64,000 bases of DNA from Magallana gigas (taxonomy: Eukaryota). Location: the NCBI RefSeq assembly GCF_963853765.1, contig NC_088861.1, positions 25,854,001-25,918,000 on the forward strand, given 5' to 3'. Positions 4,019-6,658 of the stretch are shown here, one piece after another. Position numbers and translations under genes: made by a program. Position 1 is the stretch's first letter. Each line of letters starts with the position of its first letter. Under the pieces are notes generated by a model, which saw only the letters and a program-made list of their open reading frames with translations, did not search any database and was not told the origin of the DNA.

Positions 4019-4965
4019 CAATGCTCAAATGTATAATAAAGGAGAACATTATATTCATTCTATACACAATTTCTAATTTTAATTCTGCATTTCAGTCATT
4101 TTGTGTCATATCAAGAGAATAAAAAACCTGAGTCCAGCACCAAAGGTTTAATTTTTTTTGTAATAATTCCTGACTGTTAGAGACAATCTTTGAGGGTTAC
4201 TTCTTGTGATTTAACTTGAAGAATAATTCCCCTCATTTGATCAAGAATTTAGAGTTTATGTATATTCACCTCACCTCACCTAACCTCTTCTTGCCCGCTG
4301 GCACATAAGGCAGGCCCATTATGTATAGTATGTATATAAAAATACAACATAATTCTACACGAAACATGACAATTTACATCTATTTTCAATTACTTACAAA
4401 GCTGGCTTTAAAGTCCCTGTTTTCAAGTCTTCTGTCTAAGGCTTCAAATCCTTCTTCTGAGTCTATGGTAACAAGATCAACGTCTTCTGTATTTGAAGCT
4501 GTTGTTACTGGACTCTTAAGAAGGTCTCTTATTTCAACAAGAAGGTAGTGGACTCTTCTCTGAAATCCTGTGAAACAGAATATAACTAAGTATTAAACAT
4601 TTAACACCCAAAGCATCATAAGCAAAAATTCTAGTCTCATAAAAGGTCCCTTGAATTGAAAATTTGTAACACATCTAACTGTACTCACTTTCTTCGGTCA
4701 TGGGAAAGGAGTCTGTTGAGGACTGATGCTGCTTTCGCTTAGAAAGAGATGGAAGTGTTGGGGTGCTCTCTACACTTAACCTGCTACAAGGCCTATCATA
4801 GCTCCTGGAATGTTCAGATCCTTTGTTAAGTCTTTTTGGGCTTTCTCTTCTCAGGGTTGACCTTTCACTGCTTTGTGACATAGAGTGCCTTGACCTATTG
4901 TGATGCCTGTCTCTGCTTTTTGATCTTGAAAATCTTGAGCTGTTCAAAGAGTGAACAGGACTCCT

Positions 4966-5460
4966 GGACCTTGAGATTCGTGACCTTTGTGTTGAGCGAA
5001 TTGGACTTCTGGATGTTGAAATTCTTGGCCTTTGTGTTGAGCGAATTGGACTTCTGGGTGTTGAACTTCTGGGCCTTTGTGTTGAGCGAATTGGACTTCC
5101 GGATGTTGAAATTCTGGGCCTTTGTGTTGAGCGAATTGGACTTCTGGATGTTGAAATTCTGGGCCTTTGTGTTGAGCGAATTGGACTTCTGGATGTTGAA
5201 ATTCTGGGCCTTTGTGTTGAGCGAATTGGACTTCTGGATGTTGAAATTCTGGGCCTTTGTGTTGAGCGAATTGGACTTCTGGGTGTTGAAATTCTGGGCC
5301 TTTGTGTTGAGCGAATTGGACTTCTGGATGTTGAAATTCTGGACCTTTGTGTTGAGCGAATTGGACTTCTGGATGTTGAAATTCTGGACCTTTGTGTTGA
5401 GCGAATTTGACTTCTGGATGTTGAAATTCTGGACCTTTGTGTTGAGCGAATGGGACTTCT
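4966..5460 (-). repeat. Coding minisatellite: 11 x 45 bp, encoding ([15 protein letters not shown])n
   Basis: Plus-strand unit CCTTTGTGTTGAGCGAATTGGACTTCTGGATGTTGAAATTCTGGG, head-to-tail with no spacers, few substitutions, in frame in exon 4. Confidence 0.95.
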
Positions 5461-6658
5461 TGGTGACATCGACCTATTCATCGAGCTCTCCCGACTGTTT
5501 GAACTAGCCCAGGACTTGCTTGGTGTAATAGACCTGCTACGTCTGGTTTCCATTTCATCTCTAGTAGAAGGTGAAGGTGATCAAGACCTGGAAGACTGAA
5601 GTGATGACTGGTCTTGGTTTTTTTTAGAAGAGATTTTTTGGGGTGGTTTTGGCGGCATAACTGGTGCTGAAGTATAATATCATATTGTTGGAAAATGCTC
5701 CAAAAAAAAGGAATTACCATAATAAATTGTCTTCTTTTATATCTGGATATATATTTGCATAACAATATTTAACCTGCTACAGGTAACTTCTTCTGCATTT
5801 TTATTGATGAATTGTCTTCAGCAGAATCTAATTAAACAAAATTTATATATATTTCATTAATCAAAATATCAAAGTAAATAACAAATAAAAGAATCTTCAA
5901 GTTTGTAGATAAATTGCAAGCTCACCCATAATAAAGTCACTCATGACCTTCTTTTTTGGTTTCCTTTTCATTACTGGTTCTGAGTCACACTCAGATTCCA
6001 CCGCTGTCGTCTCATCATAGTCCTCACATTCTCGATAGTCGTCTTTATTTAAAAGAAAAAAAATGCATGAAGAGAAGGTACAATTGACTTGATGAGAAAT
6101 GTATACAAAAAATTCTTTGTTAACTTTGTTGACTTCCCTACATTTTTTACATCTTCAAACATAAATTACTCGGTTTCTTATCAATAAATTAAGAAGTTAC
6201 CTGATGAAAACTTGATCTTTATCAGATCAAATGAAAGCCATTTGTCAGCAGGTTTCTTGCATTCTTTGAGTGCAGATTTTGCATTTGATGTATTTGGCCA
6301 TCTTATGCGATTTCCTTCAACCCATACACTGGGTATGGCAAGCTCCATCTCTTTTTCATCCTCTCTCCACACAGCTCTTACCCACTTCTTGTCCATCTTA
6401 ATTTAAAAAATCAAAATTAAACAAAATGCTTAAACATATTATGTTTTTCAATAAATAACATAGTTTGTTTTTTGTCAACAATGTCACAAGAAAAGAGTTC
6501 TTTGAGTTGTAATGTTTAAAAAAAAATTATTATCTGACATATATTTTATTATAAAGTCACCAATTCAGTATTAAAGAAATTACAATTACCGGTAGAACTA
6601 ATTTAGCAATATATATCTCTCTTTACAATACTTGATAGTGCTAAAAACCAACCTTATC

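Follow-up and report, generated by a model that had tools for sequence, protein, structure and literature searches.

An in-frame 45-bp tandem array in the Arg/Ser-rich linker of an oyster transposon accessory gene

RESULTS AND DISCUSSION

The window analyzed in this study is a 64,000-nucleotide stretch of the Magallana gigas (Crassostrea gigas) genome (contig NC_088861.1, positions 25,854,001 to 25,918,000). It contains a copy of a DNA transposon whose accessory gene, open reading frame 2 (ORF2), carries a tandem array of 45-bp units in its fourth exon. The array is probably a tolerated, fast-mutating coding minisatellite, located in a disordered linker whose Arg/Ser-rich (RS-like) character is ancestral to ORF2. 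Judged from its homologues, this family of transposon ORF2 proteins has long had a linker that is rich in Arg and Ser and prone to repeats, and the 45-bp array is the newest local expansion of that linker. The copy in the window itself is dead, with nonsense codons in both ORF2 and the transposase gene.

A tandem array in exon 4 of ORF2

A single strong array was detected in the gene by Tandem Repeats Finder (positions 4958-5460; period 45, 11.2 copies, 95% matches, 0 indels, score 887). Translated from the minus strand, it consists of 11 units of RSPIRSTQR(S/P)RIST(S/P) and a degenerate 12th unit, and it lies inside an open segment (5580-4678) with Arg/Ser-rich flanks. No stop codon interrupts the array in any of the three frames, and openness by itself is therefore no proof of selection at the protein level. 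Exon 4 is bounded by an acceptor (cttcag/CA) at 5666 and a donor (A/gtgagt) at 4689, and both limits recur in gene models from public databases and in contigs of spliced RNA. The original prediction, which was made from the sequence alone, had placed the array in frame within exactly these exon limits of a spliced, transposon-encoded accessory gene, and it was correct in each of these points. The eight-exon structure that it had spliced by hand is likewise that of the annotated public proteins. It had also described the equivalent exon of a related element (element 2) as much shorter and containing a doubled SSPTQR. Indeed, that exon (open reading frame 36585-37037, minus strand) is short, and its sole repeat is a 21-bp doublet at 36734-36775 (SSPTQRN/SSPTQRR). 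Exons 5 to 8 of ORF2 are conserved between the two elements.

In the window copy, a TGA codon at 5583-5581, located 121 nt upstream of the array, breaks the frame of exon 4. This codon had been overlooked when the array was first described. Because it lies upstream, the array of the window copy is outside any full-length translation. The RefSeq products equal to the window copy are a protein of 150 aa, which extends to the nonsense codon, and one of 213 aa, which starts from the first Met past the array, and both are without the array. For this test of equality, and for no other purpose, a local script was used to assemble the exons of the window copy into one chain. Similarity searches with ORF2 used public protein records as queries, and the annotated C. 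gigas and C. angulata proteins were found by a word search in which the query was exon 4 from an intact copy. In the transposase gene, all other copies have a Gly codon at the position of the TGA at 7744-7742, and a 3-bp deletion near 8158 is private to the window copy. As both genes are broken, the element is not near-intact.

Variation in unit number among copies

Approximately 6 full-length copies and approximately 7 internal-deletion derivatives of the transposon were found in the genome. The arrays of the full-length copies comprise 11, 11, 12, 14, 14, and 14 units, the two closest copies both having 14. Fewer units are present in an older, 91%-identical fragment (3 units) and at a deletion breakpoint (2.4 units). 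One C. angulata element from an independent assembly has 8.2 units, and public C. gigas and C. angulata proteins have 5, 7, 8, 9, 9, 10, and 11, the lowest of which may reflect short-read collapse. Exactly one unit is present in a 93%-identical relative represented by an RNA contig (L023). Copies also differ in the order in which the S/P variants of the unit are arranged. Thus, the array has the properties of a coding minisatellite (head-to-tail units of 10 to 100 bp in variable number, with the frame kept): the unit is 45 bp long, there are 5 to 14 units (a range that covers genomic copies, assemblies, and the two species), and no indels occur within units. The length of exon 4 ranges from 978 to 1,113 nt, and the introns beside it are short.

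Over 4.6 kb upstream of the array, the copies diverge from each other by 0.15 to 0.65%. The open 645-aa transposase is found in four copies, as is an open exon 4. The transposon family is, by this measure of divergence, very young, and it looks to have been recently active in the Pacific oyster, with several copies having both genes open in the examined parts. Loci regarded as intact include C2:45.93M, C9:44.84M, and C1:74.87M. The variable length and recent expansion that had been predicted for the array are both in agreement with these data, as copies so close to each other have up to 14 units, compared with 1 in the 93%-identical relative and 3 in the 91%-identical fragment. Neither variation out of frame nor confinement of the array to a dead copy was observed, as copies change by whole 45-bp units and 12 to 14 units are present in the four copies with an open exon 4. 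Changes by whole units follow from the mutational mechanism, however, and are therefore no evidence for selection. The distinct unit variants include 6 synonymous, 9 nonsynonymous, and 1 stop change, compared with 36:92:7 possible single changes, a count that has no power to discriminate and does not separate the three frames.

Arg/Ser composition of exon 4 and of homologous linkers

Following a compositional criterion for SR-related proteins, Arg/Ser-rich segments were defined as 20-residue windows with at least 20% S, at least 20% R, and at least 70% S+R (PMC9479744, Cascarina & Ross 2022), using our own scan and not LCD-Composer. Exon 4 of the oyster proteins contains exactly one window at 0.70 S+R, at the 3' edge of the array, while the array proper reaches 0.60 to 0.65. 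In the one-unit relative, nine windows have at least 70% S+R. The proposal that an RS domain was gained through expansion of a variable number tandem repeat (VNTR) is contradicted by these values, as the exon is RS-rich without the array and distant homologues are already RS-rich.

The region had also been called SR-protein-like. A strict SR protein, in the nomenclature of Manley and Krainer, has one or two N-terminal RNA recognition motifs (RRMs) and an RS domain that spans 50 residues or more and contains >40% RS in consecutive RS/SR repeats. In exon 4, only 30% of the residues are within RS/SR dipeptides, and no RS/SR run is longer than SRSRS. No Pfam domain, and hence no RRM, was detected in a full-length oyster protein (P0001) or in any exon, and the N-domain is modeled as a small beta domain. 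In the strict sense, therefore, the description does not apply.

A full HMMER search with the isoform lacking exon 4 recovered 578 cluster representatives. Among the 38 relatives that have both domains and come from species other than C. gigas and C. angulata, the linker varies from 8 to 326 residues. Nine of these linkers have at least 65% S+R in a 20-residue window and nine have internal tandem repeats made from unrelated units, while approximately one-third are without RS character. RS-rich or repetitive linkers were found in Mytilus, C. virginica, Saccostrea, Lingula, Carassius, Culter, and other taxa. Their repeat units include DRVGRRSRSS in Lingula (approximately 12 times) and SRRHRSKS in Mytilus edulis (5 times), and units of 28 and 47 residues occur in Culter and C. 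virginica, respectively. The gene order is conserved in Lingula and Carassius, where a homologue of the transposase (54% identity in Lingula and 48% in Carassius) is located directly upstream on the same strand.

The C. gigas and C. angulata records of ORF2 are named "serine/threonine-protein kinase PRP4 homolog" or "SRRM2-like," and RefSeq names of family members include PRP4 kinase, SRRM2, SON, SRSF4, and fray2 (P0001-P0005, P0012, P0013, P0017, P0020, P0025, P0167, and P0172). These names arise from low-complexity Arg/Ser matches and not from homology.

Predicted domains of ORF2

An AlphaFold2 (AF2) model built from an alignment of 142 relatives (mean predicted local distance difference test [pLDDT] score of 81) contains a beta-rich N-domain (residues 21-95), a disordered segment (96-139), and a helical C-domain (140-280). 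The pLDDT exceeds 90 over most of the C-domain, with a dip near residues 160-170. The single-sequence AF2 model of the 567-aa protein (pLDDT 39) was too poor for a fold search and served only to assess the absence of structure in the linker; residues 48-416 are without secondary structure in it. The disorder originally proposed for the Arg/Ser/Pro-rich region is thus supported by prediction.

In a Foldseek search with the C-domain model, the top matches were BEND6, BEND3, BANP, and NACC1, with template modeling (TM) scores by target of 0.69 to 0.73 for two BEND6 structures and 0.45 to 0.51 for the others. An independent VIA search returned BEND6, BANP, Bsg25A, NACC1, and BEND3 (Z = 9.7, 8.3, 7.7, 7.1, and 6.2), followed by the next unrelated structure at Z = 5.2. 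On BEND6, 82 of 92 residues were superposed with a root mean square deviation of 2.2 Å. As modeled, the C-domain has the globular, five-helix organization of a BEN fold. Pfam scans of single ORF2 exons and of the full-length oyster protein returned no domain, the cutoff for PF16064 (DUF4806) not being reached. In a grouper homologue (P0010), PF16064 was detected with 27.6 bits against a cutoff of 25 at residues 360-434, which align to oyster exons 5 to 7; the oyster protein P0007 matches this homologue with an E value of 4.6e-15. The closest ESM Atlas cluster is also DUF4806. A link between DUF4806 and BEN domains has already been published (PMC10789644, citing Pan et al. 2023). No fold is claimed for the N-domain, which gave only weak Tudor/chromo-like matches (Z = 4.0).

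Transcripts and gene models

RNA evidence was taken from Logan assembly contigs. Three contigs from three runs (L033 to L035) are 99 to 100% identical to the family, lack introns 4 to 7 at the annotated junctions, and reach into the array at their 5' ends. As the joined form of exons 4 and 5 is missing from the genome, these contigs derive from spliced RNA. L035, the one contig that spans the array, contains both array flanks with two collapsed units, and splicing out of the array was not seen in it. Contig L023 (run SRR22371048) represents the 93%-identical relative, which has no counterpart in this genome, and extends from the element's 5' end across the transposase gene into ORF2, with introns 1, 2, and 4 to 7 removed and intron 3 retained. 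For this contig, an intron located after the transposase stop codon and before the start of ORF2 was considered and was not called, as the junction has no clean GT-AG in comparison with the oyster copy. The first 31 nt of the contig (L023:1-31) lie outside the 5' terminal repeat and are G+C rich; they could be a read-through transcript or adapter-like sequence.

In UniProt models (A0A8W8LUN2 and cluster mates), a 783-nt intron is placed inside exon 4, which spans the whole array and, in the window copy, also the nonsense codon (Table 1). No RNA support was seen for this intron, and it may be a modeling artifact; contig look-ups of the array-less UniProt models P0006 and P0007 found none. As exons 2, 3, and 4 of ORF2 each have phase 1 at both ends, any of them can be skipped in frame. 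In the RefSeq models P0170 and P0169 of deletion derivatives, a leader exon (approximately 8850-8936, minus strand; ending in VIQYIE) is joined directly to ORF2 exon 5. Joins of this kind, from upstream of the transposase gene to ORF2, hint at alternative splicing past the transposase as in En/Spm. Intron 5 of ORF2 contains a palindromic insert of approximately 460 bp (3573-4036) that resembles a miniature inverted-repeat transposable element (MITE) and is common to all copies. More than 25 separate copies of this insert, with 87 to 89% identity, are found elsewhere in the genome.

The host transposon

The transposase matches Transposase_21 (E = 0.002 to 0.003) and DUF4218 (E = 0.0009 to 0.12) in oyster, Lingula, and Carassius. 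These Pfam matches are colinear and below threshold, and the element is therefore termed CMC/EnSpm-like, an assignment that is not proven. A perfect 12-bp terminal inverted repeat (TIR) and 2-bp target site duplications (TSDs) of different sequence in seven copies agree with the TIR and 2- to 3-bp TSD of CMC elements. CACTA termini, which mark the CACTA family proper, are absent, the element ends reading CCCAGCAGGCAT. A literature search for CACTA elements in Crassostrea returned nothing relevant. The octamer CAACGTTG has 11 matches in the window, compared with 0.87 expected, all of them subterminal in the window element (element 1) or in element 2. ORF2 would be the accessory protein of this very young cut-and-paste transposon, which has two genes, is present in M. 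gigas and C. angulata, and probably belongs to the CMC/EnSpm type.

Element 2 (approximately 34537-44900) has the same subterminal CAACGTTG repeats as element 1. Its transposase gene is interrupted by a Ty3/gypsy-type retrotransposon with an open 1,366-aa reading frame (37825-41925).

Table 1. Coordinates of the transposon, its genes, and related features in the window
Feature	Position	Strand	Description
Whole transposon copy	2141-10071	-	7,931 bp; 12-bp TIRs CCCAGCAGGCAT at 2141-2152 and 10060-10071; TSD TA at 2139-2140 and 10072-10073
Subterminal palindromic CAACGTTG repeats	2166-2280		Element 3' end; second cluster at 9989-10047
ORF2 accessory gene	2613-6396	-	8 exons: 6396-6201, 6042-5926, 5827-5774, 5666-4689, 4567-4398, 3518-3454, 3325-3231, 2731-2613; chain matched to RefSeq products
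ORF2 exon 4	4689-5666	-	978 nt, phase 1-1; Arg/Ser/Pro-rich, no predicted structure (AF2); limits from splice sites
Candidate intron inside exon 4	4805-5587	-	GT..AG, 783 nt, multiple of 3; P0007 junction SSRS/YDRP; only in UniProt/Ensembl-type models
45-bp tandem array	4958-5460	-	11 units and a partial unit; Tandem Repeats Finder and unit-by-unit listing
Nonsense codon TGA in exon 4	5581-5583	-	Arg codon in 5 other genomic copies; RefSeq XP_065927606.1 (150 aa) ends here
Transposase reading frame	6659-8593	-	645 aa, unbroken in 4 other copies; here TGA at 7744-7742 and 3-bp deletion near 8158
Homologous exon of element 2	36585-37037	-	Short; 21-bp doublet at 36734-36775 only

Origin and possible function of the array

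We propose that ORF2 would consist, in order, of a beta-rich N-domain, an acidic/basic stretch, the RS-rich linker encoded by exon 4, and a helical BEN-like (DUF4806) C-domain, and that a single ancestral 45-bp unit in the linker may have been multiplied by replication slippage or unequal exchange. As the unit is 15 codons long and there is no fold in the linker that a change in length could disturb, each gain or loss of a unit is in frame and would be tolerated. The trait that is kept would probably be the composition of the linker, which is basic and phosphorylatable and perhaps serves nuclear import or nucleic acid contact, and how many units the array contains would most likely matter little or not at all. 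The BEN-like C-domain would most likely bind the palindromic CAACGTTG repeats near the element ends, by analogy with TnpA of En/Spm. The array in the window copy is a relic.

Several points weigh against this explanation. The longest arrays (14 units) are those of the most recently transposed copies, which fits a benefit of length as well as drift. Arg/Ser-rich composition recurs across phyla without conservation of the sequence, which suggests selection on the linker, and its length could matter. The count of synonymous and nonsynonymous changes gives no sign of selection on the units and has almost no power.

The first two of these observations are also what favors a working RS-like module, phosphorylated by SRPK/CLK-type or proline-directed kinases, that mediates transportin-SR-type import, targeting to speckles or condensates, or control of the element's own splicing. 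In such a case the VNTR would tune the strength of the module, and longer arrays would be favored in the active lineage. RS-rich linkers built from unrelated repeat units in distant homologues are consistent with this proposal, as is the composition of the oyster linker, with 48% S+R over the linker region of P0001 (including exon 4) and 56 RS/SR dipeptides and 14 SP sites in exon 4. Furthermore, several introns are spliced from the transcript, and alternative forms are suggested by public models in which exon 4 is skipped, an internal intron is removed, or a leader exon is joined to a downstream exon. However, ORF2 has no RRM or other Pfam domain, its RS/SR dipeptides form no long runs, the array is less RS-dense than its flanks or the one-unit relative, and about a third of the relatives do without an RS-like linker. 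On balance, we regard a tuned RS-like module as the main alternative, unlikely but worth keeping in view. A broader form of the same idea is that a metazoan transposon clade (oysters, mussels, a brachiopod, a nemertean, and teleosts) shares a fixed ORF2 architecture in which the linker is a selected RS-like module for phosphorylation-gated import or clustering of the element ends, retuned in each lineage by in-frame minisatellite expansion; this we consider quite improbable.

Two further explanations do not rely on the encoded peptide. The array could act as nucleic acid, by providing purine-rich splicing enhancers for a long exon or extra internal sites akin to the subterminal repeats. The exon of 978 to 1,113 nt between short introns and the three open frames are compatible with such a role, and each unit contains TCAACA twice (compare TCAACG), so that by reading alone the unit motif resembles CAACGTTG; however, this match is short. 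Moreover, the RS frame is continuous with the RS-rich flanks and with both splice phases, homologues preserve amino acid composition and not the nucleotide motif, and the exon 4-5 junction of the one-unit relative is spliced in a single contig (L023). A role as nucleic acid is thus very unlikely. That the array is an assembly artifact or a feature of dead copies, with no bearing on an expressed protein, might be suspected from the broken state of the window copy and of the copy at C1:59.6M and from the collapse of the array in short-read assemblies (down to 5 units in the oldest models for C. gigas and to 2 in one Logan contig). This suspicion is largely refuted by the four copies with open exon 4, three of which were retrieved whole and also have an open transposase, by the array in the independent C. 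angulata assembly, and by its occurrence in spliced RNA contigs of three runs. A tolerated coding minisatellite in an older RS-like linker remains the explanation that we prefer.

Comparison with known systems

A close parallel to ORF2 may be TnpA, the accessory DNA-binding protein of the maize CACTA element En/Spm, as both are the second protein of a two-gene transposon with terminal inverted repeats, are derived from a multiply spliced transcript with the transposase reading frame upstream, and occur in an element with many short subterminal repeats, which in the oyster are putative binding sites. By this analogy, ORF2 may be the end-binding protein of its element. In contrast to TnpA, the predicted DNA-binding part of ORF2 is a BEN-like fold; sequence similarity between the two was neither sought nor found. 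The oyster termini are CCCAGCAGG and not CACTA, and the TSD is 2 bp. Among BEN and DUF4806 proteins (BEND6, BANP, Insensitive, Elba; PF16064), solved BEN domains superpose with the ORF2 C-domain model, but ORF2 differs in being transposon encoded, in its N-terminal beta domain and long RS-rich linker, and in remaining below the Pfam threshold.

With SR and SR-related proteins (the SRSF family, SRRM2, SON, and the N terminus of PRP4 kinase), ORF2 shares a long, structure-free Arg/Ser/Pro region with many RS, SR, and SP dipeptides. However, it has no RRM, kinase, or other domain in common with them, its RS dipeptides are isolated and not in runs, and the oyster array has two Ile residues per unit and 60 to 65% S+R. 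Coding minisatellites in disordered, long internal exons (pattern described in PMC12457776) resemble the array in their multiple-of-3 unit, high unit identity, fast change in copy number and order, and phase-symmetric exon. The oyster array differs in being part of a multicopy mobile element, so that the variation is among paralogous insertions and presumably among alleles as well.

Other features of the window

Two further tandem repeats were detected, at 27818-28269 (171-bp unit, 2.6 copies, 93% matches) and at 45601-46352 (375-bp unit, 2.0 copies, 90% matches). A short open reading frame at 11930-12226 (minus strand) encodes a GIY-YIG nuclease domain (E = 3e-7) and is probably a fragment of a Penelope-like element.

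Implications

By itself, the array is ordinary, a tolerated in-frame minisatellite in the disordered linker of a dead transposon copy. The wider interest is in the pattern across the family and in the misleading public names of its members. Splicing-factor names given by RefSeq to a transposon ORF2 family can be a source of error in work on molluscan and fish splicing factors. The predicted BEN-type domain and the palindromic subterminal repeats provide a testable model for the recognition of element ends by an animal CACTA-like element. Moreover, the recurrence of Arg/Ser-rich, independently repetitive linkers at one position forms a natural series on whether composition, length, or neither matters. 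If the linker were indeed a selected RS-like module across a metazoan clade, these would be the first transposon-encoded SR-related proteins.

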